A stretch of 64,000 nucleotides of DNA from Macrostomum hystrix (Eukaryota > Animalia > Platyhelminthes). The stretch covers positions 26,412,001-26,476,000 of the forward strand of contig CATNEN010000001.1 in NCBI GenBank assembly GCA_950097015.1. The letters run 5' to 3'. The translations under genes and the position numbers were made by a program. The notes beneath the pieces are model-generated. The model saw only the letters and a list, made by a program, of their open reading frames with translations. It searched no databases and was not told where the DNA came from. Positions 2,186-43,360 of this stretch are shown here, in pieces (within the stretch, counting starts at the first letter, position 1; each line of letters begins with the position of its first letter).

Positions 2186-3226
2186 TCAATATCCACAGAA
2201 GCGGTTCAGCTCAGCGATCTCAGCGACTCCGAGGGCGGCCTTCGCGATGGCGTAGCAAATGAAGCGACCTTTCAGAGCTCCTCCAGCTCGAGAGTTGCTG
2301 CCCAGCCTCAGGCACTGTGGCAAGCCTTGAAAGCCAGGAAACTGGGCACTTCCGCCATTGGCCGATCCGTTGAAGTAGAAGGTGGCGAAGTTCGATGCAG
2401 TGTAGACGGCAGCAACAGACACATCTTGGGCGACATTGCTCATGCTCACCAGACCAGGTCCAGACGACTGGAAGGCTACAATCTTTGCACTGCTCGGTCC
2501 TGAGAACGGGTGACTCACGTACAGCTGGGTGGTTTTATCAGAAAATTCACCTCTGATGTTTCCACTGCAGTCGTGAAACAGGTGGTAGCCCTGCTCATTG
2601 AAGGTCTGTCTGACGAGCCTCGCGTAGAAGGTAAAGTTGTGAGTATAGTCCAGGTAGCTGGTCGCCAGTGTGTTTCCAGCAGTGTCCACATCGATGAAGG
2701 CCGAGACGCTTCCAGGAAAATGAGCGCCCTGGGTGTCTCTCTCGACAGAGCCTTGAGGAGTGGCCGAGTACATCGCTGGGTTGATGAGGTTCGTGTATCC
2801 CTGTCTGAAGTCGAACAGAATCACCAGCTTTGACCCGAGGGCGGAGCTCACACCTGGAGTGCTGGGTGGGGTAGCCGACGTGGTAGGAGGAAGTTGTTGT
2901 TTTCTGAAGCTGACGCAGCCATCGGAGCCGTCAGAGCCGCTGCTCAGATCCCACAGAGAGGCCAGCTCGGAGCTGCTGCCATGGTAGCACCTTGAGCTCG
3001 ACTTCGAGAAGTGAACTCCAGCGCAGAGGTCGGAGAGCACGCAGGCAAGAACACAGTCGGCCAGGTCTTTCATGCCACTTTCAGGCCTCAGCGCAGCCAG
3101 GTTCGCAAGCGATGGACAACTCAGAAACGAGTTGAGAGTCGAAGACGTTTGGCTTGCTTCTAATCTTTTGGGCAGCGTCAGAGCAAGAAGTAGAAGTGAA
3201 ACATAATTTGAGTTGCAATTAAACAT
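2186..3226 (-). CDS. Secreted PAN/Apple + S/T linker + ConA/LamG-like protein, paralog 1 (346 aa, intronless)
   Basis: ATG-initiated ORF with hydrophobic signal peptide (VSLLLLALTL), Apple-type Cys pattern CP..C-x3-C-x5-C..CYHG..GCVSF and short PTT linker. The C-terminal beta-rich domain ends LKGRFICYAIAKAAL...EIAEL, resembling the Laminin_G_3/pentraxin C-terminus. Confidence 0.9.
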   Translation of the reverse strand: MFNCNSNYVSLLLLALTLPKRLEASQTSSTLNSFLSCPSLANLAALRPESGMKDLADCVLACVLSDLCAGVHFSKSSSRCYHGSSSELASLWDLSSGSDGSDGCVSFRKQQLPPTTSATPPSTPGVSSALGSKLVILFDFRQGYTNLINPAMYSATPQGSVERDTQGAHFPGSVSAFIDVDTAGNTLATSYLDYTHNFTFYARLVRQTFNEQGYHLFHDCSGNIRGEFSDKTTQLYVSHPFSGPSSAKIVAFQSSGPGLVSMSNVAQDVSVAAVYTASNFATFYFNGSANGGSAQFPGFQGLPQCLRLGSNSRAGGALKGRFICYAIAKAALGVAEIAELNRFCGY

Positions 3227-4750
3227 TTTAAAAAAATTATTTGATGCTTTTGCGACTTTGATGTCAGGTAGTCTATAACTTTTATTTTATTTCTTTGCTT
3301 GCCTACTAGGGCTTATATTTAAAGGCTTTCACCTCATTTGTCTTCCGGCTTTGAGAGTCTTCACAGTGGCCAATGCGCAGCCTCCATAACATGTTTGAGT
3401 TCTTGGGAGTCGCAGGTGCTTGGCTGCGCTGTTGCTATGCAGTTTTTCTTGCTGATTTCTTGGCAATGGTACCGCTCTCTTCCGTCGGAGAATTTCTCTT
3501 GCTTTTGCTTTTCACAGGGTTGGTTGTTAGGGTGGGTTGTACTTCGGATATTATTTTATGTTCGTTTTCCGAAGCAGAAACAATGGCCCATTCATCTGAA
3601 TGCACTTCCTGCAGGCTGGTTTTACTTGGTGTCCCGCACCGCTCGACTGTCGGCTTGGAAGAATTTTGTTCGCTTCTTCACTCCAAGTCTTGTGGAATTT
3701 TTTTGTTTTTTTTTCTTTCGAGTTTGCAACAAAATGAGTTTACAATTGACAATAGCTTGTAGTATAAGGTTGTATAGGCATTATTATTCCGAAACAGGTG
3801 TTTTGTACCTTAATTCAAAGACAAACAGGAAGTAATCTTGGATTTTTCGACATGCTCCGGACCATGAATCAGATACTAGAAGATTTTTTCGGATAAGAAA
3901 GTAAATCTTTTTTCTAGGCCTCTATTTAGACAACGGACTTCAGGCTTTAAAGTACATGCTTTGTTTAAGTCTTAGAAGCTTTATATGTTTTAAGGATTAT
4001 TTTAACAAAATAAGCATTTGAATTTTTCATGCATTTGACGCAAATTGATGATTTTACGGTGTAAACAACATTTACATTGTATAGTACAGTAAATTTTTCT
4101 TTGAAATGTTATTCACTTATGTACACCGTACTTCAAACGCTGAAACATTGTTTCTTTAATTTTTAGCATCTTTGTTTTCTATATTAAGGCCTAGAAACCA
4201 CGGCTATTAAGGCCCATGCCTAGCCTCAAAATCTAAACTCTCCAGAAAGAAAGAATGACGAATGTTAGTACATTGAAACCGTTCGCAAATTTTAGATTCC
4301 ACAGGCTTAAATTCCGCATGCAATGACGTTCAACTCAAAAGCAACACTTTGAGCTACTTGTAGTAAGCTTCTCGGAGCTGGTTTCTCGTTTCGCCAGTTT
4401 ATTTCCAAAGAAACAAAGGTGAGGTCTTTTTTCGTGCGTACCAGTAGGCACCGTATTTACCTTCTAAAACTTAGGTGCTAAAACTTATTGACATCGAAAT
4501 TATGCAAAGGAAGCTAATTTGTTGGAGTATCGAAATACGGAGTCCGCAGAAACAATTCTCTATCCCAAACGGATAAAACTGGCTAGCTGGTCGATAGCCT
4601 TCTTCAGAATATTTAAGAATACTTATACTAATAAGTATCGAATACTCATACGCTCATAAGTAAAAAGTAAATAAATAAGCAAAACAAATCTGCCTAATCA
4701 ATGTAAGCAACTTTCATTCTGACGATAAAGTAAAATGAATTCACACAAAC

Positions 4751-4816
4751 GGCTTCCTTATCGGCTCTGCCGTTGAAGTAACGGGTGGCGAAGTTCCGTC
4801 CGTTATAGCAGCAGCA
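4751..4816 (-). pseudogene. Short remnant of a LamG-domain paralog
   Basis: Minus strand reads YNGRNFATRYFNGRADKEA versus YTASNFATFYFNGSANGGSA in paralogs 1 and 2. Confidence 0.6.
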
Positions 4817-4936
4817 TGGTACGTATAGTGTATTTCAATGGTTAAAAATACTTTATTAATTTAGTTTTGTCACTAGGACTCTTGTCCTTGCATGCTCATA
4901 TCTCGATTTGTCAGTTCATTCAAACAAATGAATGAA

Positions 4937-6058
4937 TCAGTAGCCACAGAAGCGGTTCAGCTCAGCGATCTCAGCGACTCCGAGGGCGGCCTTCGCGATG
5001 GCGTAGCAAATGAAGCGACCTTTCAGAGCTCCTCCAGCTCGAGAGTTGCTGCCCAGCCTCAGGCACTGCGGCAAGCCTTGAAAGCCAGGAAACTGGGCAC
5101 TTCCGCCATTGGCCGATCCGTTGAAGTAGAAGGTGGCGAAGTTGGATGCAGTGTAGACGCCAGCAACAGACACATCCTGGGCGACATTGTTCATGCTCAC
5201 CAGACCAGGTCCAGACGACTGAAAGGCTACAATCTTTGCACTGCTCGGTCCTGAGAACGGATGACTCACGTACAGCTGGGTGGTTTTATCAGAAAATTCA
5301 CCTCTGATGTTGCCACTGCAGTCGTGAAACAGGTGGTAGCCCTGCTCATTGTAGGTCTGTCTGACGAGCCTCGCGTAGAAGGTAAAGTTGTGAGTATAGT
5401 CCAGGTAGCTGGTCGCCAGTGTGTTTCCAACAGTGTCCACATCGATGAAGGCCGAGACGCTTCCAGGAAAATGAGCGCCCTGGGTGTCTCTCTCGACAGA
5501 GCCTTGAGGAGTGGCCGAGTACATCGCTGGGTTGATGAGGTTCGTGTATCCCTGTCTGAAGTCGAACAGAATCACCAGCTTTGACCCGAGGGCGGAGCTC
5601 AGACCTGCGACGCCGGTTTCTAGAGACAATGTCGTGGCTTTTGGTTCTGCCGCTGAAGTCATCATTGAAGCATCTGGACCGGACGTCGTTTCTGGAATGG
5701 CCAGAGGGACTATTGTGGAGATAGGTGACATAGTTCTATAGCTGACGCAGCCATCGGAGCCGTTAGAGACGCTGCTCTGGTCCCACCGAGAAGCCAGCTC
5801 GGAGCTGCTGCCATGGTAGCACCTTGAGCTCGCTTTCGAGAAGTGCACTCCAGCGCAGAGATCCGAAAGCACGCAAGATAGCGTACAGTCGGCCAGGTCT
5901 TTCATGTCACGGACTGACATTAGCGCGGCCAGGTTGGCAGGGGACGGACATCTCAGAAACAATTTGAGTACTGTGGACTTTTGACTCGCCGTGCTTTGTT
6001 CCGCCATCGTGAGAGCAAGAAGAAATGTTAAAGAGTCGGTGAAAAGCTTTCCCTTCAT
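4937..6058 (-). CDS. Secreted PAN/Apple-LamG protein, paralog 2 (373 aa)
   Basis: Same architecture as paralog 1 with a near-identical LamG domain and a longer Thr/Ser/Pro linker. Confidence 0.9.
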   Translation of the reverse strand: MKGKLFTDSLTFLLALTMAEQSTASQKSTVLKLFLRCPSPANLAALMSVRDMKDLADCTLSCVLSDLCAGVHFSKASSRCYHGSSSELASRWDQSSVSNGSDGCVSYRTMSPISTIVPLAIPETTSGPDASMMTSAAEPKATTLSLETGVAGLSSALGSKLVILFDFRQGYTNLINPAMYSATPQGSVERDTQGAHFPGSVSAFIDVDTVGNTLATSYLDYTHNFTFYARLVRQTYNEQGYHLFHDCSGNIRGEFSDKTTQLYVSHPFSGPSSAKIVAFQSSGPGLVSMNNVAQDVSVAGVYTASNFATFYFNGSANGGSAQFPGFQGLPQCLRLGSNSRAGGALKGRFICYAIAKAALGVAEIAELNRFCGY

Positions 6059-6135
6059 TTTTAGCAGAGGAAATGAACCTTTCTTTCAGCGCAACTGAAC
6101 GGCAGAGTAATAAGTCATAAGTGTATCTTTGCGTC

Positions 6136-6143
6136 TCTTTATA
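6136..6143 (-). promoter_or_regulatory. Putative TATA box of paralog 2
   Basis: TATAAAGA about 80 bp upstream of the ATG, with a CCAAT at about 6164-6168. Confidence 0.45.
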
Positions 6144-7224
6144 GTTGAGCTAAGGAGTTTTAATTGGCCGTTGCTATGTAGTTTGGAGCTTTTGCCTTTG
6201 TTTGAACTATTATTCAGAATAGTTCCTTGAGTAAGTTTTTCTGAGCTTTGTGTTTGATTGAGCTAATTGCTTTTGGTCTGGTCATTGTGATTCAGCTCGT
6301 CAAACAGAGAAATCTGGTCAAAAGCCTATTTAGAGAGCTGATGAGAAATATGATCACATATTTGCTTAGCTCAACCTTTTGCAAGAAAAAGAGACATTTC
6401 TACTCGTCTTAAAATAATAAGAAAAACTTATTGTGATTTCAACGTCAATTGCCTACAATGTTTCCGCTTTAGCTCGTACCACCGGTAGTCGCATAAGTTT
6501 TTAATTAGCTGGTTTGGATGCTCAAAGTCAGCTCAAACTTTTATTTTGTTATATATTAACAATTTTTGTTGAAATACAATAATAATCGAAAACAAAGACA
6601 AAGTTGTAAAGTTAGGCAGACAGATTGACCGTTGAGTTGATCGTAATTACCGGAGTGAGTTAAAGAGATCAAGCAAACGTATTGATTTTTAGCTCTGCGA
6701 ACCTAATTTCTACCAAATGGTTCTTTTGGTATATTTTGGACTTACAATTCAAGAACCCCATTGCTTTTTTATTAATAAAAATTAGCGACTACCTCAGAGC
6801 CGCTGTGTCACATCAATTCATTCGAGATTTAAAACTGCTGTTAAACTTCTGTTTTTATATTTGCGCTACTTAAAGTACTCTCTCAGATAACAGAAGTCAG
6901 GTGCACACGCAAACGGCTTATTCTATGCAGGTTATGCCACTTATGCGCAATAGATTTTAGGGCCACCTTTCCTTTGACCCGGCTGGTGCTGATGTACTAT
7001 AGTCATTGGCATGGTTAAATGTCTTAGTTTTGTTTTAGTCCGGGTTTAGTTGATGAACTCTTAGCAAAACTCATGAGGAATGCAGTTCTTATGACCTGAT
7101 TTAGATTGGCCAAAGTGCCGAGGTTTGATTCTGTCGGACACACCAGATCAGAACTCAGTTGGGCTTGCTTCTCAGTGGCAGGTTACGAGTGCCAGTCTTC
7201 ACGCGGAGCAAAACGCGAGGGCTA

Positions 7225-8286
7225 TTTTCCAAAAGCATCCCGAATATAACATGCAAAATTTTCGCATATTTATCCTGCGATAACATGTTACCGTGTTACA
7301 GAATTCGAGCATTTCTATGAAAGTAAATCGTGAAAGCAAACGTATAAATTGTAACTAGCTTATTGTTACTACATGTCAGTGTTACTTTGCAGGTCCTGTG
7401 ATGTATCTCTAGTTGTTATAGTTTTGCATTTCTATAGTATTTGGACTTATATTTCAAGCGCTGAAAGTATTCATTAATATAAAATGACTATTTAATAATA
7501 TATAATAAATTATAATGGAACTGTAACACGGTAACATGTTATCGCAGGATAAATATGCGAAACTTTTGCATTGTGACGAAATGAATTGACAGGAAGCTTC
7601 GGCGCACGCTCAATCCAATTGTAGTTAGTAATCAGTGCAGTATAGTGTAGCGGTAGCACTCTTAAATTCTTGTTTATTATTGCGACAACCACTGGGACAC
7701 GTGACAAGCAATATAGTAAGTTAATTAGAGGACAGGTGCAGGAGCTCGACGTGGACAACAATATGAGTGGCGAGTATAAGTGATTACAGTGGCCGGGACA
7801 CGCAAGACACGATAGGACAGGAACAGTGGAGGAAGGAAGGACAGGCTCAGAACCAGAACAAATAGGCAGGGATCAGAACAGGCAAGTGAGTAAGGAAGGA
7901 CAGGCTCAGAATCAGTGGAGCGCAAGCGGGCCTAAAGCCCTTGGTTAAATAAACTAGCCAGTCTAAAGAACAGGGCGATCGATAACTCTGGCCAGACAGA
8001 GCTCGCACGCTCATTGGCTGAGGGAAAATACATTGAACCACGCGTAGGAAATAAGCTAGAATGGCGCGATGTGCGTTAACGGTTACTTACAGTAGTGCTC
8101 TAACCATTTGAATTAGTTACATGAAACAGCAGAAGTGGATGAAATTACACGATATGAGTTAAAACGGCCCAAGCTAGTACGCACGCAAATTAGCTATGTA
8201 AATTAACACGTAAATTAAATTGCTAGGGGGCGCTTACAACAAGTGACAACGTCACAGCATGTTATATTCGGGATGCTTTTGGAAAA
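7225..8286. mobile_element. MITE/foldback element with ~76-bp TIRs; right TIR split by a solo LTR
   Basis: 7225-7300 (TTTTCCAAAAGCATCCCGAATATAACATGC...GTGTTACA) is the near reverse complement of 7521-7571 plus 8261-8286. Confidence 0.8.
7572..8256 (-). mobile_element. Solo LTR (4-bp TSD, gypsy-like)
   Basis: Termini TGTGACG...CGTCACA, flanked by a GCAT duplication (7568-7571 and 8257-8260); AATAAA on the minus strand near 7675. Confidence 0.8.
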
Positions 8287-8299
8287 CATAGGTGAAAAC

Positions 8300-8600
8300 G
8301 TACACATTGCAAAGGCCATGCAATTTTTCCTCCTTGGAAAGACCATGGGACTATTTCAAAATACAAGATAGTTCCAAAACCGAACGACCGATTTTCGTGA
8401 AAGTCCACCACATGGATGAACTGAACTGACTTTCAAAGCCGTCCAACGTCACCGTGGTAGATATATTCAGTGATTCTTGTCGAAATCACTAGTGACAATC
8501 ATGGCAATTGGTTGAATATTTTGGGAGACACAGAAAAAATAGATATATGGGTACTTAAAATACCCCATGGTCTTCTACTGCTAGGAGTATCGTCGGTTTA
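8300..8600. mobile_element. Degenerate, reverse-oriented copy of the MITE family at 35550-36006
   Basis: GACCGATTTTCGTGAAAGTCCACCA near 8386-8410 is the reverse complement of TGGTGGACTTTCA(C/G)GAAAATCGGTC seen at ~14090 and ~35905. Confidence 0.5.
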
Positions 8601-9699: not shown

Positions 9700-10021
9700 T
9701 GCATTGAACTGGTGTCTAATTACAATTCTGAAAGAGACTTCATTTTTATATCTTTCGTATTGCGCTGGGTTTCGACTCTTTCAGCTACAATCAGGATTAT
9801 TCAGAACACTTAAGGGCCCTTGCGAGAGAGTCTTCGGATGAATAAGGAGGCTGAAGTAGGCTTCAGTAGACTCATAGCACACCATTTTTAAAGTGTGCTC
9901 CACTGCATTCTCTAAAGTTCATCAAACACATTCATCTATTGTTAGTGATTATCATTTTCAAATTTGGTGTACTTTTCTGATAGCAGACAGTAGGCCGAGA
10001 ATACAAACCATTTCAAGAAGA

Positions 10022-12978
10022 AGGATTGGTAGCTGGAATCGCAGCTAGATTGGTAGCTGGAATCGCAGCTAGATTGGTAGCTGGATTCGCAGCTAGATTG
10101 GTAGCTGGAATCGCAGCTAGATTGGTAGCTGGAATCGCAGAAGGATTGGTAGCTGGAATCGCAGCTAGATTGGTAGCTGGAATCGCAGCTAGATTTGTAG
10201 CTGGAATCGCAGAAAGATTGGTAGCTAGATTTGCAGAAAGATTGGTAGCTAGATTTGCAGAAAGATTGGTAGCTGGAATCGCAGAAAGATTGGTAGCTGG
10301 AATCGCAGAAATATTGGTATCTGGAATCGCAGAAAGATTGGTAGCTAGATTTGCAGAAAGATTGGTAGCTGGAATCGCAGCTAGATTGGTAGCTAGATTT
10401 GCAGAAAGATTGGTAGCTGGAATCGCAGCTAGATTGGTAGCTGGAATCGCAGCTAGATTGGTAGCTGGAATCGCAGAAGGATTGGTAGCTGGAATCGCAG
10501 CTAGATTGGTAGCTGGAATCGCAGAAAGATTGGTAGCTGGAATTGCAGCTAGATTGGTAGCTGGAATCGCAGAAGGATTGGTAGCTGGATTCGCAGAAGG
10601 ATTGGTAGCTGTAATCGCAGAAAGATTGCTAGCTAGATTTGCAGAAAGATTGGTAGCTGGATTTGCAGAAAGATTGGTAGCTGGAATCGCAGAAAGATTG
10701 GTAGCTGGATTTGCAGAAAGATTGGTAGCTGGATTTGCAGAAAGATTGGTAGCTGGAATCGCAGAAAGATTGGTAGCTAGATTTGCAGAAAGATTGGTAG
10801 CTGGAATCGCAGCTAGATTGGTAGCTGGAATTGCAGCTAGATTGGTAGCTGGAATCGCAGAAAGATTGGTAGCTGGAATCGCAGAAAGATTGGTAGCTGG
10901 AATCGCAGAAAGATTGGTAGCTAGATTTGCAGAAAGATTGGTAGCTGGATTTGCAGAAAGATTGGTAGCTGGAATCGCAGAAAGATTGGTAGCTAGATTT
11001 GCAGAAAGATTGGTAGCTAGATTTGCAGAAAGATTGGTAGCTAGATTTGCAGAAAGATTGGTAGCTAGATTTGCAGAAAGATTGGTAGCTGGAATCGCAG
11101 CTAGATTGGTAGCTGGAATTGCAGCTAGATTGGTAGCTGGAATCGCAGAAGGATTGGTAGCTGTAATCGCAGAAAGATTGGTAGCTGGATTTGCAGAAAG
11201 ATTGGTAGCTGGATTTGCAGAAAGATTGGTAGCTGGATTTGCAGAAAGATTGGTAGCTGGAATCGCAGAAAGATTGGTAGCTAGATTTGCAGAAAGATTG
11301 GTAGCTAGATTTGCAGAAAGATTGGTAGCTGGAATCGCAGAAAGATTGGTAGCTGGAATCGCAGAAAGATTGGTAGCTGGAATCGCAGAAAGATTGGTAG
11401 CTAGATTTGCAGAAAGATTGGTAGCTAGATTTGCAGAAAGATTGGTAGCTGGAATCGCAGAAAGATTGGTAGCTGGATTTGCAGAAAGATTGGTAGCTGG
11501 AATCGCAGCTAGATTGGTAGCTAGATTTGCAGAAAGATTGGTAGCTGGATTTGCAGAAAGATTGGTAGCTGGAATCGCAGAAAGATTGGTAGCTGGAATC
11601 GCAGAAAGATTGGTAGCTGGAATCGCAGAAAGATTGGTAGCTAGATTTGCAGAAAGATTGGTAGCTGGATTTGCAGAAAGATTGGTAGCTGGATTTGCAG
11701 AAAGATTGGTAGCTGGAATCGCAGAAAGATTGGTAGCTGGAGTCGCAGAAGGATTGGTAGCTGGAATCGCAGAAAGATTGGTAGCTGGATTTGCAGAAAG
11801 ATTGGTAGCTGGATTTGCAGAAAGATTGGTAGCTGGAATCGCAGAAAGATTGGTAGCTGGAATCGCAGAAAGATTGGTAGCTGGAATCGCAGAAAGATTG
11901 GTAGCTAGATTTGCAGAAAGATTGGTAGCTGGATTTGCAGAAAGATTGGTAGCTGGATTTGCAGAAAGATTGGTAGCTGGAATCGCAGAAAGATTGGTAG
12001 CTGGAATCGCAGAAAGATTGGTAGCTGGATTTGCAGAAAGATTGGTAGCTGGATTTGCAGAAAGATTGGTAGCTAGATTTGCAGAAAGATTGGTAGCTGG
12101 ATTTGCAGAAAGATTGGTAGCTGGAATCGCAGAAAGATTGGTAGCTGGAATCGCAGAAAGATTGGTAGCTGGAATCGCAGAAAGATTGGTAGCTGGAATC
12201 GCAGAAAGATTGGTAGCTGGAATCGTAGAAAGATTGGTAGCTAGATTTGCAGAAAGATTGGTAGCTGGATTTGCAGAAAGATTGGTAGCTGGAATCGCAG
12301 AAAGATTGGTAGCTAGATTTGCAGAAAGATTGGTAGCTAGATTTGCAGAAAGATTGGTAGCTGGAATCGCAGAAAGATTGGTAGCTGGATTTGCAGAAAG
12401 ATTGGTAGCTGGATTTGCAGAAAGATTGGTAGCTAGATTTGCAGAAAGATTGGTAGCTGGAATCGCAGAAAGATTGGTAGCTGGAATCGCAGCTAGATTG
12501 GTAGCTGGAATCGCAGCTAGATTGGTAGCTGGAATAGCAGAAAGATTGGTAGCTGGATTCGCAGAAGGATTGGTAGCTGGATTCGCAGAAGGATTGGTAG
12601 CTGGAATCGCAGAAAGATTGGTAGCTGGAATCGCAGCTAGATTGGTAGCTGGAATCGCAGCTAGATTGGTAGCTGGAATAGCAGAAAGATTGGTAGCTGG
12701 ATTCGCAGAAGGATTGGTAGCTGGATTCGCAGAAGGATTGGTAGCTGGAATCGCAGAAAGATTGGTAGCTGGAATCGCAGCTAGATTGGTAGCTGGAATC
12801 GCAGAAAGATTGGTAGCTGGAATCGCAGTAAGATTGGTAGCTGGATTCGCAGAAGGATTGGTAGCTGGATTCGCAGAAGGATTGGTAGCTGGAATCGCAG
12901 AAAGATTGGTAGCTGGAATCGCAGCTAGATTGGTAGCTGGAATCGCAGAAAGATTGGTAGCTGGAATCGCAGCTAGAT
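10022..12978. repeat. 24-bp minisatellite, about 120 units (GATTGGTAGCTGGAATCGCAGAAA and variants)
   Basis: Direct inspection; the unit is a dimer of related 12-mers. It explains the ~1000-aa ORFs on both strands, neither of which starts at ATG. Confidence 0.97.
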
Positions 12979-13444
12979 TCACATATATGCGATCACAGAA
13001 AAGCGCTTCGCTGAAACCGCAGCACAAACTATTTTCAGTATCGTAGTAAGGGTCGTATCTCCCAGCTAGAACCAAACCTACGTAGAATCGCAGCTAGAAT
13101 CGCTGCAAGAGGTGCCGCATCAAAAGTCGTCTCTAGAAGCTTAGCTAATGAACCTAAATGACATTGTTAGATCATGCATAAATTCTGAATATGAATTTCT
13201 CACTATCCTGGGATTATTATGGGATTCTTGCATTCGGGTGGAATCACATAAGAACAGAACTTCTAAAACCGAAAATAAACTGAATGCTTTTATCGAGGCA
13301 GTTAAATTATGAGCGCAGATATATTTTTTTATAAAAAATATATATTTACTAACACACTTCCAGAAGAGAAACATTCAGAAGATCGCATACCTAATTAAAG
13401 TGAAAGGCTAATTATTGAGTTTAAAATCTCTACCATATACGAGT

Positions 13445-14194: not shown

Positions 14195-14324
14195 ATCAAC
14201 CTTGCTGTTTGAACATGTGAACAACTAAATTATCGAAAAGAGTAGAACAAATAGTATCCTTGCAGTTCTCCACTCCAGAAGGAGTCATTCCAGTTAATCT
14301 AGCCTTCACAAACAGGTGCGATGA

Positions 14325-15365
14325 TCAGGTCTGACAGTAATTATCCAGCTGCTGTAATTCACTCAGAGTCAGCGCGTCCTTCCCGATGACGTAGCAGATC
14401 AGCAGGCCTCGGATGTTGTCGGTCGCGGAGCTCTTATCGCCCAGACGCAGGCACATCGGACTGCCGGACGGGTAAACGCCGCTGTCAACCCCTGGCCCAA
14501 TGAAGGACCCATCCATGTAGAAGGTACTCAGACTATTGCCTAGAAAAACAGCGCCCGCTGAAACCGTCTGGGGTGCGTTGTCGGTCCTCAAAAGAGTACT
14601 GTTTGTCTGCTGCGTGACCTTGTTTCCTGAAGCTGGCGCGCCCGGGAAAAGATGCTCGACAGTCAAAAAGCCGCCTTGATCACCAAAGAAGCCATGATGG
14701 TCGTTTGTTGAACAGTCATAAAAGTTGTGATAGACTTGCTTGTAGTTAGTTTGTCTAGCCAATCTGACAAAGAAAGTGAAATTATTTGCATGCGACAAGA
14801 ACTGCGGCACGAGAGTATTGCCGCTGTTGTCTACTTCGATGTAGGTGTTGACATTTCCTCCAGGGAAGTGGGCACCAAGACTGTCTCGGCTTATAGATCC
14901 GAAAAGAGTTGCGGAATACTTAGCGGCATTCACTAGATTCGTGGTGCCCTTTCTGAAGTCTAGTAGAATCAGGAGCTTCGATGTGACAGACGAATCAAGA
15001 CCGCTTACAATTGTGGTGGTCGGAGCGGTCCCTGTTGAACCCACCCCAACTTTCACGTAGCTGACGCAGACCCCAGTTCCTGGCGTGTTGGTCGGGGAGA
15101 ACAAGTCCTCCGTTTGCTTGGCAGTTGCAAAGTAGCATGTTCCATCAGCACTTCGGAAGGTCGCGTACAAGTTAGCATTCATGGCGCACTGAAAAATGCA
15201 GTCTTGCATCGAATGTGAGCCAACTACTTTCTTGAGCAGCGTCAAGCTTGAGTCTGCTGGACAAGACTGCAATCTGTTAAACTTCAACGAGGAAGTTGTT
15301 GAACAGTCTCCAGCCAGGACTGTCGCAGCTGTTATGCACAGTACTGCGCTCGCTAAAGCTTGCAT
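14325..15365 (-). CDS. Secreted PAN/Apple-LamG protein, paralog 4 (346 aa from MQALASAV)
   Basis: First ATG is at 15365 and is followed by a signal peptide. PAN domain lacks Cys4; LamG domain has KLLILLDFR..YHNFYDCS..CLRLG..ICY..YC. Confidence 0.88.
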   Translation of the reverse strand: MQALASAVLCITAATVLAGDCSTTSSLKFNRLQSCPADSSLTLLKKVVGSHSMQDCIFQCAMNANLYATFRSADGTCYFATAKQTEDLFSPTNTPGTGVCVSYVKVGVGSTGTAPTTTIVSGLDSSVTSKLLILLDFRKGTTNLVNAAKYSATLFGSISRDSLGAHFPGGNVNTYIEVDNSGNTLVPQFLSHANNFTFFVRLARQTNYKQVYHNFYDCSTNDHHGFFGDQGGFLTVEHLFPGAPASGNKVTQQTNSTLLRTDNAPQTVSAGAVFLGNSLSTFYMDGSFIGPGVDSGVYPSGSPMCLRLGDKSSATDNIRGLLICYVIGKDALTLSELQQLDNYCQT

Positions 15366-18262: not shown

Positions 18263-19324
18263 ATGATTCCGTCAACAGCCTACCTGCTGCCTCTGATTCT
18301 ACTGAGCAGCCGCTCAGCCGCAGGACAAAATCCAGAACGGCGCTTCGCTCTGTCTTCAGTCGCCAGCTGTCCTTCGATTGTAAATCTCGCCCTGCTGAAT
18401 CCTGACATCAACGCCAGAGATTTGTCCGACTGCGCAGCAAAATGTGCCAGCTCTGAAAGCTGCTCTGGTTTCTATTTTTCAGAAAGTCTCGCTCGATGTT
18501 ATCCGGGAAGTAGGAATCAAATTACGTCACTGTGGAATGCAAGAAGCACTTCTGCTTCAGACGGTTGTACCAGCTTTGTTTTTCCCGAGCTCAAAATTTT
18601 TGGATGAAGCCGCCAGCTGCCATGCCAACCACTTCTTCCAGCATTTCCGGCATCAGCGATTCTACTGCATCAAAACTGGTGATTTTGTTTGACTTCAGAC
18701 TGGGCTACACCAACCTCGCAAACCCAACCAAGTACGGTGCCAGCCCCCATGGATCGGTGACACGAGACAGTCAAGGCGCGCACTTTCCAGGAACCAACTC
18801 TGACTACATCGAGATTGATACGAATGGAAATACTCTCGCGCCGACCTTTCTAGATTATCCCTCAACTTCATTTTCTTTGTGCGAGTGCTGAGGCAGAGCT
18901 GGAACCAGCAGAACTATCACCTTTTTCATGACTGCAGTGCCAATCCCAGAAGTGAGTTTGCCGTTCGCCTTGGCAAGCTGCTTGTCAGGCACTCGTTTCC
19001 AGGAAAGGTGGATCTGGTTGACCAGACGGAAAGCATCGAGTCAAATGACATCCTAGTGAATACGCAGAACATTCTGCAGGAGGTCACAGCCGCCGCAGTT
19101 TTTACCGGAATAAACTTTCTACTTTGTTCTTCAACGGAACAACGGTTGCTAGGAGCAGGGATTTGAACTATGCCTACCAGGGACCACTGCAATGCCTTCG
19201 CGTAGGTTTCAACTCGGCCGCCAGCGCCGCACTCAAGGGTCGCTTCGTTTGCTACGCCATTGCCAAGACAGCTTTGAGCGCCAATGAAGTTGCTGAACTA
19301 GGCAACTACTGCGGAAGCACCTAG
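18263..19324 (+). pseudogene. Inverted PAN/Apple-LamG paralog 5 with three -1 frameshifts (pseudogene or assembly error)
   Basis: ORFs 18245, 18532, 18879 and 19124 join into one full-length paralog; shifts are near 18580, 18860 and 19120. Confidence 0.85.
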
Positions 19325-19863: not shown

Positions 19864-20078
19864 TTACACATGTCCCAACAGCACAGCCGCAGCTCTTGCG
19901 CGGCACATCTGAAGGCTGTTCAGTCCATGGACTGGGTGGACGCCACACCCGCCCTCAATTACCCTTTCCCCAGCTAATGCTCGTACGCATTTAGCAACTG
20001 GGTGAACTGAAGCAATGCAGATTTTGTATCTTGCTAAAGGACACAAATTGTTCCAGTGGAGTCGGGAATCGAACCCCA
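19864..20078 (-). mobile_element. 5'-truncated SINE (family A)
   Basis: High similarity to 20761-21054 and 37461-37739. Confidence 0.75.
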
Positions 20079-20202
20079 TCGTTCATTTTATGTTCGATTG
20101 CCTGCTGAAAAATGAAACTTGTTCGCGTTTCTCTCGAGACTTTGAGACTAGTGAGTGCAACCGGAGGTGCAACCGGAAGTGCAACCGTTGCAATGCAAAA
20201 GT

Positions 20203-21300
20203 TTACTTGGGTTCGCAGAACGATTCGATCTGCTGCAACTAAATCAGACTGAGCACCTCCATGGCGATGGCTTAGCAGATAAGCCGGCCGCGCAACCGGC
20301 TACCACATCGAGGACTCCATGTGGTAGCCGAGACGCAGGCACAACGGCTCGCCAGAGAAGTCACTTGACTGTACGTTGGGCTTTTTCAGGAATGCTCCAT
20401 CTTTAAACTTGCTGGTTATATTCCTGTCGGAGAAGGCGGGTATAAAACGTGAAACCAGCCATATGACTTAAGCAAGTGGATGCCAGGGTGTTATGCTTGT
20501 TTCAATCTCAATGAAGTTCGTTGCTGCTTCCGCCAGGAAAATGAACTCCCCGACTGTCTTGAGTGACGAAGCCATGCGGCATTGCCTTGTCGAAAGTCAT
20601 AGAGAAGAATCAGCTTCGATAGAAGAAATGCACTCAGACCGGAAATATTCGGTAAGAAGGGTGTCGTATAGATTCAGTACTTTTAGCTACCGGTGTAGCA
20701 CTTACCGAATTAGACACAAACTCTGTAGCTAAATAATTAATTAATAATAATAATAATTGATTACACCTGCCCCAATTGGGTCAGATGTGCAGCCGACAGC
20801 ACAGCCGCAGCTAATGCGCGGCGCATCTGAAGGCTAGCTGCGTACAGCTGTTCAGTCCACGGACTGGGGGGACGCCACACCCACCTTCAATTATCCCAGC
20901 TGATGCTGGTACCCATTTAACAGCTGGGTGAACTGAAGCAATGCAGAGTTAAGTGTCTTGCTAAAGGACGCAAATTGTTCCAGTGGAGTCGGGAATCGAA
21001 CCCCCGACCTTCAAGTCGTGAGTCCGACGCCCTAACCACTAGGCTACAACCTCTGCTATTAATAATAGCAGAGGTTGTAGCTAAAACATGACTCCTACAG
21101 ACAGAGAATACTTCTGATCTTGTAGAAAAAAAGAGATCTTAGTTAATCGGAAGTTTCCAGGTAGCACCCGGATGCAGAATGAAATACCACTGAGCAGCCG
21201 GCTCGAGTAGCGCATTTGAAGACACTAGCCGGCAAGCTTTGAACGTCCTTTGATAGGTACAGGTGCGAAAGGTCTGAAAGGGCTTAAATGTCGTTTTTTA
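20203..21300 (-). pseudogene. Decayed PAN/Apple-LamG paralog 6 interrupted by a SINE
   Basis: Minus-strand fragments VFKCATRAGCSVVFHSASGCYL (~21150-21225), SKLILLYDFRQG, PHGFVTQDSRGVHFPGG, NTLASTCLSHMAGFTFYTRLLRQ, FKDGAFLKKPNVQSSDFSGEPLCLRLGYH and LQQIESFCE, with stops, frameshifts and internal deletions. The 5' boundary is approximate. Confidence 0.85.
20761..21054 (-). mobile_element. Full-length tRNA-derived SINE (family A)
   Basis: Head AGAGGTTGTAGCCTAGTGGTTAGG (A box) ... GGTTCGATTCCCG (B box). Central AGCAAGACACTTAACTCTGCATTGCTTCAGTTCACCCAGCTG..AAATGGGTACC resembles V/Meta-type SINE cores. (TTA)n tail. Confidence 0.85.
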
Positions 21301-27989: not shown

Positions 27990-28290
27990 AATGGTGGTCA
28001 GAGCTTTGGACTTCTGATCGAGAGAGGTCGGGAGTTCGTATCTCAGCCCGAGTGACACCGTTAATTTTCGAGCAAGACACTTCATTCCCTTTTGCTCTTC
28101 AGTTCACCCAGCTGAGAAATGAAAGCCGGCACGATTCAGGTTAGAAATTCGAATCGGTGAAGCAGCCTCCCCTCCACGGACCGAACAGCTGTACAACCTT
28201 TGGAAGCGTCTCTCAATAGCTGCGGCTGTACCCACGGCTGTACATTTGTAGCTGACCCAACTGGGCTACATGTAATTTCTATCTGCATGT
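27990..28290 (+). mobile_element. Older SINE family A copy
   Basis: GGTCGGGAGTTCGTATCTC head and GAGCAAGACACTT...CTTCAGTTCACCCAGCTG core. Further degenerate copies at ~17470-17680, ~38155-38270 and ~44475-44730. Confidence 0.6.
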
Positions 28291-29356: not shown

Positions 29357-30556
29357 CTAGGCGCAGAAGGATTCCAGCTGCTGCAGCTCGCTCACGGAGA
29401 GCGCCTCCTTGACCACCGCGTAGCACACGAACCGGCCCTTCAGAGCGCACGCAGACTCGCCGCAGTAGCCAAGGCGGAGGCACAGTGGCGCCCCAGAAAA
29501 AGCATTAGACTGAACAGTCGGATTTAGGAGCAGGGCACCATCTTTAAAGAGTTTGTACTCGCTTCTACCAACAAACACTGCGCCGACTGATGCTAACTGA
29601 AGATTATTTTCGTTGGACTTAAACGCACTGTTATCAGATGTAACAGTGACCTTGCTAGAAACTGCTGGAAATGAATGCGAAATAATGAGCTGCCCGTTGT
29701 CATCACCAAAGTTGCCGTGACTGCTGGTTGGTACCGAGCAGTCATGAAAGTGGTGATACCGCTGTTTTTCTTTTGTGCTTCTCCAAAGTCTAGCAAAGAT
29801 TGAAAAGTTTTTGTTTGGGCCAAGGTAATCTGGCACTAGATTGTTCATGTTTGTGTCTACATCGATGAAGTTGTTGGTGCTCTGTGCTGGAAATTGAGCA
29901 CCTTGACTGTCCCGAGTTACTGAACCGTGGGGAGTGGCGTTGTACATTCCTGGATTGACGAGGTTTGTGTAGCTCAGCCTGAAGTCGAACAAAATTACCA
30001 GTTTCGATGTCAGTGATGCGCTCAGGCCTGCGATGGTCAAGCTGGTTGTCATGGTGTTTTTAGTAGTTGTGACGGCGGTTGGGCTTGTGGACGTTGTGGT
30101 GGATGTAGCAGTCGATGTTTGAACTTTGGTTGTCGTCGATGTTTCGGACATTGCTGTTCTCAATTCGGTTGACGCGGAAGTTTCTGCCCACGTGAATGTC
30201 ATCGCTGGAGAGTCTGCTTGACTGTCCTTGACAAAGCTTATGCACCCATCTGCCTCGCTCACGCTGAGTTGGTTCCACAGAGTTGCCTTCTGATCTGCGT
30301 TGCCATGATGACATGAGGACGCAGCTTTCGAGAAGTGCATCACTGAGCAGCTCTCAGAGCTGATGCATCTCAAGGCGCAGGCGAATAAATCTCGCGTTGA
30401 GTCCACAGAGCCCAGTTGAGCTCTGTTCGAGTCGGATGGGCACCTCGGGATCGACCTCAAAACCGAAACTCCCTGCACTGCTACTGCAGCCTGGGGAGCT
30501 GCTAATGTAAGAACAATGGCCGCTACCACACACCAGTGTGGGCTGCAGGACAACAT
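29357..30556 (-). CDS. Secreted PAN/Apple-LamG protein, paralog 8 (399 aa)
   Basis: Signal peptide, PAN domain most similar to paralog 7, Thr-rich linker and LamG domain. Confidence 0.9.
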   Translation of the reverse strand: MLSCSPHWCVVAAIVLTLAAPQAAVAVQGVSVLRSIPRCPSDSNRAQLGSVDSTRDLFACALRCISSESCSVMHFSKAASSCHHGNADQKATLWNQLSVSEADGCISFVKDSQADSPAMTFTWAETSASTELRTAMSETSTTTKVQTSTATSTTTSTSPTAVTTTKNTMTTSLTIAGLSASLTSKLVILFDFRLSYTNLVNPGMYNATPHGSVTRDSQGAQFPAQSTNNFIDVDTNMNNLVPDYLGPNKNFSIFARLWRSTKEKQRYHHFHDCSVPTSSHGNFGDDNGQLIISHSFPAVSSKVTVTSDNSAFKSNENNLQLASVGAVFVGRSEYKLFKDGALLLNPTVQSNAFSGAPLCLRLGYCGESACALKGRFVCYAVVKEALSVSELQQLESFCA

Positions 30557-35473: not shown

Positions 35474-35549
35474 ACTGGTACGTGTCAGCTAGTTTTCGCA
35501 GCTAATGCAATCAAGGTTAAGCGCATTGTTGTCGGCCAGTAAAGTCCAT

Positions 35550-36006: not shown

Positions 36007-36038
36007 CAGCAACCAGTAAACAATTTGTAGTTAAAAGT

Positions 36039-37214
36039 TCAATTTGCACAGAACTGTTCCAGCTGGTGAAGCTCGCTGATCGTTAAAGTTGTCGCAGCCA
36101 CAATGTAACAAATGAATCGGCCTCGAAGACTAAACGATGGTTCGGCATGGTAGCCGAGACGCAGGCACAGCGGCTGACCCGTGTACGAAGCCGACTAGCT
36201 GTTGGGCGCCTGCAGAAATGAGCCGCCTTTGAAGAAGTTGCTGAGACTGTCGCCCACAAACACTGCCGCCACAGACGCAAGTTGAGCGCTGTTGTCATTG
36301 GTGAAAACATTTTCGATTGACTCGCGAAGCACTTGGGTCTGTGAAAAGCCAAAGACGCTCGGAAACGGTTGATCGACTCGAAGGCGGCCTCCATTGTCTC
36401 GGAACTCTCCCCGATAGACGGGCGAAGCGGAGCAGTCGTGGAAGTAGTGATAGGTCTGGTGGTTAGGATCGGATCTAGTTAGTCTTGCATAGAATGTGAA
36501 GGACTTTGAATGGCTCAGATAAGTGGATGCCAGCGTGTTCCCATCGGTGTCGATATCGATGTAGTCATTGTTGGTTCCTCCAGGGAAGTTTGCGCCCTGG
36601 CTATCCCTGGTGACAGCGCCTCGAGGAGTGGCGAAGTACTTGGCGGGGTTGACAAGGTTGGCATATCCCCGTCTGAAATCGAGAAGAATTATCAACTTGG
36701 ACGCTAGTGCTGAACCCAGTCCTTGCACTACATGCTCGTAATTGTTTGTCGTCATTTCCACTGGTACTAAGGAAGTTGACATCGGTGAGCTGCCAGATGT
36801 TGACGTGGTCGGCATCGTTGTCATAACCGGCGTGGTCTGCCCAACTGACGAGATTTCGCCTGAAGTTACTGCTGATTCATTCGGTTCTGAAAATTTCGCG
36901 AAACTCACACACGCCGGGCTTATTTCAGTAGAATTTGGAGGTGAGAATAGATCAAGCAGTTGGTGGCTGTTTCCGAGGTAGCAGACACCTTCAATGCTTC
37001 GAAAGATAACCGAGCAGTTTTGACGAGTGGCACAATAATAGGCGCACTCCTCCATGGCTCGATGCCCAGAGAGCCTTGACAATTGGCTGAGGGCAGAAAC
37101 TCTAGGACAAAGCGACAGCTTTTGAAACCTCGTTCTAGACTTTCCAAAGCAGTCTGTAGAGCAGACTGTAGTTGCTGAGTAAAACAATATCAACAGAGTA
37201 GCGATCGTGTACAT
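36039..37214 (-). pseudogene. PAN/Apple-LamG paralog 9 with a single in-frame TAG at 36195-36197
   Basis: After the TAG the same frame continues SASYTGQPLCLRLGYHAEPSFSLRGRFICYIVAATTLTISELHQLEQFCAN to TGA at 36039-36041. Confidence 0.85.
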
Positions 37215-37460
37215 ATTGGAGAAATCACAGAATTTTCTTACCGATTAGTTAATTTAATTTTCCTACGCAATTTTTAGTAATGCTTTACTTTTGCCTAAAA
37301 CTCTCCTTCAAATATTCACTACGACACTGAATGCACAAATGGCTCCCGGCATTTCTTTTCCTATCCCAGCCAATCACAGACGAGTGTATTCTGTAACCTT
37401 TTTGTTCGACCGATTCGTTTACTAATGGATTATAATAAAAATAATTAATAATTTATTAAA

Positions 37461-37739
37461 CCTGCCCCAATTGGGTCAGATGTGCAGCCGACAGCCGCAG
37501 CTAATGCGCGGCGGATCTGAAGGCTGCGTACAGCTGTTCAGTCCATGGACTGAGGGACGCCACACCCACCTTCAATTACCCCAGCTGATGCTGGTACCCA
37601 TTTAACAGCTGGGTGAACTGAAGCAATGCAGAGTTAAGTGTCTTGCTAAAGGACACAAATTATTCCATTGGAGTCGGGAATCGAACCCCCGACCTTCAAG
37701 TCGTGAGTCCGTCGCCCTAACCACTAGGCTACAACCTCT
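37461..37739 (-). mobile_element. Full-length SINE (family A)
   Basis: Nearly identical to 20761-21054. Confidence 0.85.
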
Positions 37740-40205: not shown

Positions 40206-41344
40206 CTGTGTAAATCTATGTATTCTTCCACAGGACGTCTGTCGGATGCAGCAGTTCTGAAGGCCAATCGTTGGCGGGCACAACCTGTAGGACAGTGCAT
40301 TTGGTACATGAAAACCATCCTGTCCAACCATTGTGCAATGAACCTGGCCTTGTCGCAGAGAAGCTGCATGTTCTCAATTCACTGAGTTAGAATATGATTT
40401 GCTTCTTATGTGATAGCTATTGCCCTTCTAAGTTATGACTTATTTGATTGACAGTCTCTCAGGCTTCTAGCAATTTTCAACATGATACCTTGCCTAGCTG
40501 CCACCCACAGCCTGAGGCAGTGAAAGAGGCTCAAAAGAGAGAAGGTGTCGTTTGTTTGCTTTTTTCACAAGCAGACTTTTTCTCGCACACTTTCTATAGG
40601 ATCACTCAGCATTTCTCACTTACAGCAGTTTGGATCCGAGCCAGTCTGTACTTGCGATCAAACAAAAAATATACACGCCTTGACTATTCAGCTCTCACCT
40701 CTCTATCCAGTTGCAAAATTCTATATTTTCAAGTACGTTTTGTTTAGTTTATACACGCAAATAAGTAACTTACTTCTGGCAGCTAATTGTGCTCAATTGG
40801 TTAAGCGCGCATATACTTCTATGGAATGAGAATTGAATTTAATTGAATTTAAAGAGAAGAGCTTATAATAAACGGTTTTCCTTGATTTAGTATAGTCTAT
40901 GGCCTATAGTCTATGGGAAATGGGAATTCTCCTCTTGATTGGGTGTTTATCTACTTCATTGGCTTTTAGTCTATGGTCGAGAGTAGTTCTATGGCAACGG
41001 CTGTTACTGCAGTAGTAGCAGTAGTATGTCTACTGCAGTAGTATGTCTACAACAAACACGTCTACGATATTGTTCATTTTGAAATAAGATTTTTATCAAA
41101 GGTTCGATGATCAGAGTTACTTGCCGATAAATAACACGGCCTACTTAAAATGGAGGCTTTTCATATGAACAGTTTTTGCTACTTCCATTTTTAAACATTA
41201 TCATCATATGTTTTAGCAGAATAATGAAGTTCCACTCATTCCTTGTTCCCTGATCGAGAAATGGTGGGCAAATGGCGATCATAACGCTGTTTATGTAATT
41301 AGAATTATTTTGGATTACATTTTATGCGAACCTCTCCTTTGACG

Positions 41345-41830
41345 CAATCCCGTGCCGCAGTTCCGCGCCCGTCTCGCAGGCTTAGGAACATCCTTTTGAA
41401 CCAAAACCGGAAGAATATCCGCGCCTTCGCCATGACCCTCATGGGCCACGGCTACCTTGCTAGGCACTGTTTCCTCCGGGGCGACCTTGAGAGTGAACTT
41501 TGCCCCATTTGTGAGTACGACAACGAAGATGCTGAGCACTTTGTGTGTCACTGCCCTTGCTTTAGCAGAGACCGGCTACGCTACCTCGGGCCCAACCCGT
41601 CTATAGACGAGATCTGCCAGCCCGACAGCATTCCACGGCTCGTCCAGTTCCTCCGGGCAACAAGACGAGCCACGTTCTTCCCTACGCAAGACAACGCTGC
41701 AGGACGGACCGGCGGACCACCCTGACCGGCCCCGTGGCCTCGCCTGTCTGCGGGCCTACAGGGGTATGGGCGATCCTCGCCTCCCCGCTGCGTCCACGGA
41801 CCACCCTGCAGCTAAGCAAAGTAAGTCAAG
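41345..41830 (+). mobile_element. 5'-truncated non-LTR retrotransposon (I/R1/Loa-group 3' end with zinc knuckle)
   Basis: Translation LMGHGYLARH..CPICEYDNEDAEHFVCHCP; flanking TCTCCTTT(G/A)ACG duplication at 41333-41344 and 41831-41842. Confidence 0.8.
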
Positions 41831-42325
41831 TCTCCTTTAACGACTAGACCTCTGTTTCTATTATCACTACATTATTAGAACAAGACAGACAGGGTTTTGT
41901 GGCCTTCCTGATTCATGAGCTTTTGAGCACATTTCTTATTCATTCTTTTGTGCTCTCAAAAAGCTGAATCCATCTCACCGCTCTTGCTTCAGCTGTTTAA
42001 ATACGTGCAAAATGGACATTTTCAATGGAGCTTTTAATACTTCTGAACTGACGCGAGTCAACAAAGTTTGGTCAACAACAATGGAGCTTCCATTAGGTAC
42101 CTCCTCAGCTAGTTTTGTAGGCTTAAAAAGACTAGGGCCGAGCAGAAAGCTTCTTTGTATGCCGGATAGGACGCAGAAAAAAAGAGGAGCTTTTACACTC
42201 GCATTTCATAGTCAGAGCAGATGCGAGGTACAATTTTATTTGAACTCATTTCAGGGGCATTTGAAACACAATAAGAAAGAGGCTGAGTAAGGATCAAGTT
42301 CTATGATAGGCACAAGGCTCAAGGC

Positions 42326-43360
42326 TCATCCGCAGTAGGCCTCCAGCTGCTTCAGCTCGCTCAGAGTGAGGGCCTCCTTTGCCACCGCGTAGCAGATGAA
42401 CAGGCCACGGAGAGCGACCGTGTTGTCGTTGTGGTAGCCGAGACGCAGGCACAGAGGCTCACCTAAGTAGCTGCTAGATTGCGCATTGGGCGTTGACAGA
42501 AATGACCCGTCCTTAAAAAAGTAATTCAAAGCACCGGCCGAAAACACCACTCCAACAGAAGCCAGTTGGAATTCATTGTTATTGCTGAAAACATTTTCAA
42601 TGGAATCGCGAAGCACTTGGCTTTTGATAGGCGGGAACGCATGCACAATTTGAATTCGTCCACCGTTGTCTCCAAACTGCCCCCTGTTGCTAGCAGAAGC
42701 AGAGCAGTCGTGAAACAAATGATAGACTTGGTGATGCATGTTGTTTCTTAGAAGTCTGGCATAGAAGGTGAATGATTTTGTGTCACTCAGATAAGTTGAC
42801 GCCAGGGTGTTTCCGTTGGTATCCACCTCGATGAAGTCTTTATTGTTTCCACCTGTAAAATTGACACCCTGTTCAGTTCGAATGAGGTTCCCATGCGGAG
42901 TGGCGGTGTACGTGCCTGGGCTGATAAGATTGGTGTAGCCCTGCCTGAAGTCGAACATGATCACCAATTTCGAAGCCAGACTAGCATTGATTCCTGAAAC
43001 CCGCGCACTGGGTGGTTCCTGGCTCGCATCCCAAGTCCGCACGTAACTCTCGCAGCGGTCAGGTGTATGAGTGCCGTTCGCAGAGAAATTTTCCGCCAAC
43101 TGACGAGTGCTTCCGAAGTAGCAATCGGATGAGGCCCTCTGAAAAATCACCGAGCAGTTCCTGAACGCAGCGCACTCCACAAAGCAGGCTCTGGGATGGA
43201 CGCCAGCCAGCCTGCGCAGGCTTCTGAGCTGGTCAGCGCTACTCGGACAGACGCCCGCTTTGGTAAAGTTCACTTTCAGGGTCTCGCGCACTGTGGAACA
43301 ATTGGCGAATTTTGCCGCGCAGAGCAGCAGAAGAACCACAATCGCAGAGGCACTGGCCAT
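42326..43360 (-). CDS. Secreted PAN/Apple-LamG protein, paralog 10 (344 aa from MASASAIVV)
   Basis: First ATG at 43360, then signal peptide, PAN domain, very short linker and a LamG domain closest to paralog 9. Two CCAATAAGA motifs lie upstream (~43458, ~43507). Confidence 0.9.
   Translation of the reverse strand: MASASAIVVLLLLCAAKFANCSTVRETLKVNFTKAGVCPSSADQLRSLRRLAGVHPRACFVECAAFRNCSVIFQRASSDCYFGSTRQLAENFSANGTHTPDRCESYVRTWDASQEPPSARVSGINASLASKLVIMFDFRQGYTNLISPGTYTATPHGNLIRTEQGVNFTGGNNKDFIEVDTNGNTLASTYLSDTKSFTFYARLLRNNMHHQVYHLFHDCSASASNRGQFGDNGGRIQIVHAFPPIKSQVLRDSIENVFSNNNEFQLASVGVVFSAGALNYFFKDGSFLSTPNAQSSSYLGEPLCLRLGYHNDNTVALRGLFICYAVAKEALTLSELKQLEAYCG

Follow-up and report, generated by a model that had tools for sequence, protein, structure and literature searches.

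The window analysed here is a 64,000-nucleotide stretch of the genome of the flatworm Macrostomum hystrix (contig CATNEN010000001.1, positions 26,412,001 to 26,476,000). Ten paralogous loci, nine of them on the minus strand, are located at positions 2186-43360 of the window, and their intact members encode proteins in which a predicted PAN/Apple module is joined by a tether rich in serine and threonine (S+T) as well as proline to a predicted jelly roll. These loci were found in agreement by tblastn with the paralogues and by scanning all six translated frames of the window with a family hidden Markov model (HMM). Together with the open reading frame (ORF) listing, both searches showed that a preliminary description of the window, which had reported ten loci in about 41 kb with nine on the minus strand, was correct in its coordinates, counts and motifs. 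Six of the ten loci (A, B, D, E, F and H) are intact, each being a single uninterrupted ORF in one exon, and four are disabled. The E-values of the intact window copies against the family HMM range from 1e-128 to 1e-145, so that chance resemblance is excluded by far. The loci are listed below; the alpha and beta types of the PAN module are those separated by the PAN tree described further on.

2186-3226, minus strand: gene A, intact, 346 aa, with signal peptide, beta-type PAN/Apple module, 27-residue linker and LamG_3-like jelly roll; HMM E 9.9e-139
2186-2856, minus strand: putative gene-conversion tract of gene A that covers its jelly-roll domain and matches gene B at 4937-5607 with 98% identity
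4937-6058, minus strand: gene B, intact, 373 aa; HMM E 4.1e-145; contig-covered span about 4789-6095, colinear with the genome
9214-9699, minus strand: locus C, 161 aa, with signal peptide, PAN module and linker only; HMM positions 7-139, E 2e-17
14325-15365, minus strand: gene D, intact, 346 aa, with alpha-type PAN module; HMM E 3.6e-129
18278-19315, plus strand: pseudogene with all family regions kept and split across several frames; found as four HMM pieces and as tblastn pieces
20215-21277, minus strand: decayed, fragmentary pseudogene, found as short HMM and tblastn pieces (E 6e-10 to 6e-5), with two internal TGA codons
24299-25615, minus strand: gene E, intact, 438 aa; HMM E 9.8e-132; the longest linker of the window, 117 residues with 39% S+T
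29357-30556, minus strand: gene F, intact, 399 aa; HMM E 1.8e-139; linker of 78 residues with 50% S+T
36045-37214, minus strand: locus G, full length with one in-frame TAG at 36195-36197 (codon 340 of 389); HMM pieces 5-308 and 314-362
42326-43360, minus strand: gene H, intact, 344 aa; PAN module at 43025-43285 and jelly roll at 42329-42991; its protein was used for structure modelling

Downstream of locus C there is no remnant of a jelly roll, and neither tblastn nor the family HMM gave a family match between 6058 and 9214. In locus G, the reading frame and the motifs are kept downstream of the TAG codon.

The M. hystrix assembly Machtx_v2 comprises 220,453,370 bases in 42 contigs, as stated in its publication (Wiberg et al. 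2023, PMC10468722). The family profile matched 94 pieces in this genome, including at least 20 intact two-domain ORFs and several broken ones; six intact genes are in the window and 14 are elsewhere. The array of the window extends upstream, where three further intact copies (U1 to U3) are located at 26.398-26.406 Mb. The tandem array therefore counts 13 loci, most of them in the window. Contig 1 bears a second array at 25.156-25.168 Mb, and other copies were found on contigs 14, 34, 38 and 41. Contigs 9, 11, 3 and 7 (e.g. C9:1003842-1010254) also bear clusters of short ORFs of about 150 aa, whose match to the profile is limited to its last 140 positions (E 1e-13 to 1e-8). These may represent a remoter family with the C-terminal jelly-roll half, or exons of spliced relatives.

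When the protein of gene F was compared by phmmer with 1.84 billion representative proteins, only two matches were obtained, both from M. lignano (E 1.5e-20 and 2.5e-46). The family profile matched a single M. lignano protein in the protein collection (E 1.3e-90), and a word-indexed protein search with H gave no relative. A whole-protein Atlas search returned PAN_1 clusters of giant viruses at 0.88-0.89, which is under the informative level, and these were kept as a lead only. The two M. lignano proteins, A0A267E973/PAA58135.1 (BOX15_Mlig032668g1) and UPI0007A151EB, are true members of the family and share its two-domain layout, its cysteines and its motifs. They are 25-43% identical to the window genes and carry automatic annotation only, one of them as 'Apple domain-containing protein'. 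Outside relatives were found only in M. lignano, and the family appears to be restricted to Macrostomum among the collections searched. In the literature, nothing was found that links Macrostomum to apple or PAN domains or to the M. lignano locus tag. The preliminary description had not recognised a named family, and indeed no description of this one was found in the literature searched. The combination of PAN module, tether and LamG_3-type jelly roll is not described there either, both folds being individually known.

Protein layout and predicted folds

The intact proteins start with a hydrophobic N-terminus and small residues before the mature part, as is typical of signal peptides. The N-terminal module that follows has six conserved cysteines (C38, C59, C63, C69, C80 and C103 in H), and the spacing C-x3-C-x5-C is present in 20 of the 24 family members. 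The C-terminal domain has about 220 residues, four conserved cysteines and the invariant motifs DFR, YH..(H/Y/F)DCS and CLRLG. Its invariant polar residues are D, R, N, R, Y, H, D, D, H and R, among them D137, R139, N144, R205, Y213, H214, D231, H240 and R306 in the numbering of H. The chain ends 1-3 residues past the last of its cysteines and has no C-terminal hydrophobic tail, so that no membrane anchor is present. The layout of signal peptide, PAN/Apple module, S/T linker and C-terminal domain that had been read from the translations is upheld, as are the four C-terminal cysteines and the YH..(H/Y/F)DCS motif.

The tether, measured from the last PAN cysteine to the SKL motif, is 26-117 residues long in the window, with 23-50% S+T, and 4-222 residues long across the family. 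Tethers of more than about 25 residues contain 20-58% Ser+Thr in most members and, to judge from this sequence, are probably O-glycosylated. The longest one belongs to a 535-aa member on contig 14 (1,050,035-1,053,820), in which the 222 residues form a true mucin-type tandem repeat of TTTPTTATP units with 58% S+T. This member is the nearest relative of M. lignano UPI0007A151EB.

The PAN/Apple fold was defined as an antiparallel sheet packed on one helix, in about 70-90 residues. The N-terminal domain modelled alone reached a predicted local distance difference test score (pLDDT) of 79.9. Most of its 25 best matches in VIA were PAN, apple or related WSC and MANEC domains, with Z 3.8-7.6 over 65-82 residues. 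LAPP (Z 7.6), the PAN domain of an S-receptor kinase (7.2), the N domain of HGF (6.5) and plasminogen (6.5) were among them, and Wsc1, HAI-1 MANEC, MIC4, SML-2, factor XI/kallikrein and AMA1 also appeared among the structural matches. In Foldseek, HGF, plasminogen, MIC and AMA1 likewise made up most of the list, with no E-value below 0.066. When a family sequence profile was compared with PDB sequences, saratin, a fungal oxidase PAN domain, MIC4 and HGF were found at E 0.035-0.27, all of them PAN proteins. The PAN_1 profile (PF00024) matched 11 of the 24 family members at E <= 0.1. The PAN fold was assigned because the structural matches are consistent and the cysteine pattern fits, and the conserved cysteine core of PAN/Apple domains, together with the outer N-to-C cysteine pair of apple domains, appears to be present.

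The predicted fold, the six cysteines with C-x3-C-x5-C and the nature of an extracellular binding module are shared with LAPP, HGF N, plasminogen PAp, Toxoplasma MIC4 and factor XI. In contrast to the known PAN/Apple proteins, the Macrostomum proteins have a single PAN module, fused to a jelly roll via a mucin-like tether. The apicomplexan microneme lectins TgMIC4 and Sarcocystis SML-2 are also secreted, and their apple modules bind galactose-type glycans. However, these lectins consist of apple modules in tandem and lack a jelly roll, and no sequence relationship between them and the Macrostomum proteins was seen that goes beyond the fold.

The AlphaFold model of H was built on a 24-sequence family alignment and has a mean pLDDT of 83.1. 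Residues 122-344 were modelled as a jelly roll, with pLDDT mostly between 84 and 98. VIA gave 112 chains at Z >= 8 for this part, and the binding modules among them reached Z 13-18 over about 160-208 residues. The best match was domain 4 of AbnA, which binds arabinan (Z 18.1, root mean square deviation 2.8, 180 aligned residues), and further neighbours were the lectin-like HCN subdomain of clostridial neurotoxins (Z 15-17.6), sialic-acid-binding CBM40 (14.4-14.7), TSPN (14.2) and pentraxins (13-14). Foldseek gave E-values down to 1e-7 for the model. Protein-language-model features of the C-terminal part matched Laminin_G_3 clusters in 23 of 30 matches, at 0.97. The Laminin_G_3 profile (PF13385) was aligned over positions 8-151 of its 151 positions, and 8 of the 24 members matched it at E <= 0.1. 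The C-terminal domain of H is therefore predicted to be a two-sheet concanavalin A (ConA)-like beta-sandwich, a fold of about 150-220 residues that had been anticipated for this domain.

The jelly-roll profile alone had no match in the protein collection and none among PDB sequences. The predicted beta-sandwich is the same as that of AbnA domain 4, CBM40, HCN, TSPN, pentraxins and other Laminin_G_3/ConA-like modules at 16% identity or less, but the Macrostomum domain has its own four-cysteine pattern with YH..DCS and CLRLG, and lacks toxin, enzyme and collagen parts. The pentraxin signature H-x-C-x-S/T-W-x-S/T is absent from all 24 family members, and the likeness to pentraxins is one of fold only. 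In the receptor-binding domain of clostridial neurotoxins, only the HCN jelly roll aligns with H 122-344. The toxins have an HCC beta-trefoil after HCN as well as translocation and protease domains, whereas the Macrostomum protein ends after the jelly roll; the family profile detected no sequence similarity to clostridial neurotoxin among PDB sequences. Within the family, the jelly roll varies mainly in its loops, with a mean column entropy of 1.94 bits against 1.38 bits for the strands.

Mode of evolution and transcription

Pairwise ratios of nonsynonymous to synonymous substitution (dN/dS) were 0.1-0.8 in both domains and in all pairs, most pairs being saturated at synonymous sites. These estimates indicate that the family is under purifying selection. 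Part of its diversity appears to be older than the species: UPI0007A151EB of M. lignano is 68% identical to the contig-14 copy of M. hystrix in the jelly roll and 57% in the PAN module, and the two were grouped at 97% support, which implies that paralogue lineages predate the split between both species.

Against this old background, some genes share nearly identical patches. The jelly-roll DNA of A, B and U1 is 98-99% identical (dS 0.03-0.05) and the PAN parts are 74-81% identical (dS 0.25-0.6); between A and B, dS is 0.054 in the jelly roll and 0.605 in the PAN part. Self-blastn of the window aligned 2186-2856 of A with 4937-5607 of B at 98.06% over 671 nt, the match beginning at the stop codon. 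When the loci were aligned together with 1.5-kb flanks, identity climbed from the start codon to 98-100% in the jelly roll and dropped abruptly at the stop. Both flanks are unalignable, and in the self-comparison of the window the homology between loci is confined to coding sequence. It follows that the duplications are old and that no recent birth is visible; a recent segmental duplication was considered and rejected, since the flanks have no homology. In U2 the tract is broken by an older patch. In the 25.16-Mb array, two genes share a tract of 97-100% identity that starts in the PAN module, takes in the tether and extends through 60% of the jelly roll; beyond it lies an old patch (dS 0.5-2.1). 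Coding patches of 98-100% identity inside anciently duplicated genes point to gene conversion. The divergent patches between near-identical paralogues were also considered as positively selected islands. This was rejected because they are high in dS as well as in dN, which argues for old unconverted sequence rather than recent adaptive change.

The two domains also appear to have separate histories. In a quick tree of the PAN module, a long branch with 99% support separates two types: alpha, which comprises D, H, the 25.16-Mb array and contigs 14 and 34, and beta, which comprises A, B, U1 to U3, E, F, 24.93 Mb and contigs 38 and 41. In approximately unbiased (AU) tests, the jelly-roll data reject this split (p 0.0006), E and F being nearest to H and the 25.16-Mb array. 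The PAN data in turn reject the corresponding jelly-roll and full-length groupings (p 0.006 and 0.003). According to these trees, likewise quick trees, and tests, genes E and F join a beta-type PAN module to a jelly roll nearest to those of alpha-type genes. Simple distances point the same way: from E and F to H, dN is about 1.04-1.10 in the PAN module and 0.40 in the jelly roll, and from E and F to A and B it is 0.61-0.68 and 0.58-0.60. The significant conflict between the PAN and jelly-roll trees suggests that whole domains have been exchanged across the tether.

The preliminary description had proposed birth-and-death evolution. The death half of that proposal holds, as four of the ten loci are disabled. 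Recent birth, by contrast, is not visible, since the flanks are unalignable and the near-identity consists of conversion patches. The sequence comparisons indicate instead a mode that combines old duplication, concerted evolution, domain shuffling and some gene loss.

In order to look at transcription, positions 1500-7400 (genes A and B) were compared with the contigs of four runs of one 2020 study, which hold 39-47 Mb of contigs per run. The contigs span gene B at about 4789-6095, that is, the ORF with short ends resembling untranslated regions (UTRs), at 95-100% identity and without joints. In the compared region, the intergenic DNA around B is uncovered except for 194 nt in one run (3252-3445) and for 6840-7353. 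Coverage that is colinear and limited to the ORF and its UTR-like ends is what transcriptome assemblies would show. Hence transcription of gene B, without splicing, is very probable, and the assumption that the genes are transcribed very probably holds for this gene at least. At gene B, TATAAA occurs 85 nt before the ATG, and AATAAA occurs 80 nt past the stop. No promoter or poly(A) motif common to all paralogues was found.

The segment 6840-7353, between B and C, is covered by contigs of all four runs, one of which has a loose end with an A-run at 7217. It has no contained ORF of 60 aa or more and no family homology, and may be an unannotated transcript or UTR.

Proposed function

Taken together, a secretory N-terminus, two extracellular binding folds, a mucin-like tether, the lack of an anchor, variable loops, constraint and reassortment suggest that the family encodes soluble, two-headed extracellular binding proteins, which form an old and reshuffled repertoire of intronless genes restricted to the genus. 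We give this reading a probability of about 0.6. Each intact gene would direct the secretion of a small soluble protein with two independent binding-type modules, and each head would recognise a glycan or a protein, in a lectin-like or adaptor-like way, in a secretion or on a surface. Specificity would be set by the variable loops on the conserved framework of the jelly roll. The repertoire would be maintained by purifying selection and reshuffled between paralogues, through conversion of patches of coding sequence and through the exchange of whole domains across the tether.

Several points weigh against this reading. The gathering thresholds of Pfam were reached for neither domain: the best Laminin_G_3 match scored 23.4 bits against a cut-off of 27.6 (E 5e-5 to 1e-4) and the best PAN_1 match 18.9 bits against 21.4, gene A itself scoring 23.4 and 15.7 bits, both under the cut-offs. 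The structural matches of the PAN module, at Z 7.6 or less, fall in the range that VIA grades as middling, which is modest for a small domain. A metal site, or even a catalytic one, would account equally well for the roughly ten polar residues that are invariant in the jelly roll. The groups compared in the AU tests were chosen after the trees had been inspected, and the PAN alignment has 88 columns. Finally, the four runs are not recorded as RNA, and their contigs leave gene A uncovered.

If the reading of soluble two-headed binders is correct, it adds a large genus-restricted family, with at least 20 intact genes, to the few secreted recognition molecules that have been characterised in free-living flatworms. 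The arrays also offer a clear natural case of conversion limited to coding patches within old duplicates, and of domains being reassorted across a tether of low complexity. Since Macrostomum is a laboratory model in which RNA interference and transgenesis are available, the family is experimentally tractable. Secreted families specific to one lineage are common, and the finding is useful rather than surprising. A bolder version is unlikely on present evidence. In it, the family would be a combinatorial recognition repertoire, with recombination and gene conversion producing new pairings of the two PAN types with the several jelly-roll types. If true, the worm would possess two-headed receptors, directed for example at microbes, food or mates, with specificities that are mixed between paralogues at the DNA level.

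Two other roles have about the same small chance of being the right one. The proteins might be reproductive secretions, from seminal fluid, the female tract or the eggshell gland, that act on the partner or on gametes. This would agree with findings in Macrostomum, where many secreted reproductive transcripts are lineage-specific and have no recognisable domains (Weber et al. 2018, PMC5977470), and with the restriction of the family to one genus, in multi-copy arrays. In the accessible text and supplements of that study on 76 prostate-limited M. lignano transcripts, however, the terms PAN, apple, laminin, concanavalin and lectin do not occur, which is weak evidence against a role in seminal fluid. 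Moreover, dN/dS values below 1 and lineages common to M. lignano, such as that of the contig-14 copy with its 68% identity, are not the pattern of fast turnover.

The proteins might also belong to a structural or adhesive matrix, such as mucus, rhabdites, cement or eggshell, with modules that cross-link the matrix rather than recognise varied targets. The presence of two heads per protein and of a mucin-like tether of up to 222 residues in one member would suit this role, and PAN modules are present in matrix and cuticle proteins. On the other hand, the proteins are small and monomeric, without a repeat or polymerisation domain. Variation concentrated in loops and many divergent paralogues are also more typical of recognition repertoires.

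A catalytic jelly roll, acting as a ConA-like glycosidase, lyase or trans-glycosylase with the PAN module for targeting, is much less probable. The many invariant polar residues would be explained, and the ConA-like clan does contain glucanases and lyases, a glucuronan lyase being matched by the jelly roll of H at Z 11.4. Yet non-catalytic binding modules clearly lead the structural matches, with catalytic folds lower, and the Pfam and language-model matches are to Laminin_G_3 and not to glycoside hydrolase families.

A purely decaying array without present function, to which the four disabled loci and the uncovered gene A might point, is contradicted by constraint and by the coverage of gene B with transcriptome-like contigs, since six long ORFs have remained open although synonymous sites are saturated, dN/dS lies well below 1, and cysteines and motifs are conserved in M. 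lignano as well as across at least 20 genes.

Other features of the window

A minisatellite with a 24-nt unit (123 copies, 92% match) is located at 10019-12979, in the interval that separates loci C and D. Several of its frames are open, on either strand, and its minus strand would give an octapeptide of the type ATNLSAIP, with one N-x-S sequon per unit. No ATG and no sign of coding were found in this segment.

Copies of a dispersed repeat of about 200-300 bp, with 68-93% identity between copies, occur in both orientations at 19875-20077, 20742-21054, 28071-28276, 37436-37739 and 44494-44669. They sit between the family loci, some of them adjoining pseudogenes and locus G, and the repeat may be a small mobile element.

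The right part of the window is gene-rich and contains tandem-repeat blocks at 49837-50760, 54565-55298, 56034-56485 and 59234-60032. These are partly inside long ORFs, for example a proline-rich ORF of 703 aa (57139-59250) and an ORF with PDPHSHAI-type repeats (59456-60274). The rest of the window holds ORFs that we take, from reading their translations only, to be THG1-like, kinase and Helitron-helicase-like, which fits an animal genome. The ORF at 62193-62888 is presumably the C-terminal part of a PIF1/Helitron-type helicase, again named by reading its translation only, and suggests that the window ends on the right with what is left of a Helitron.

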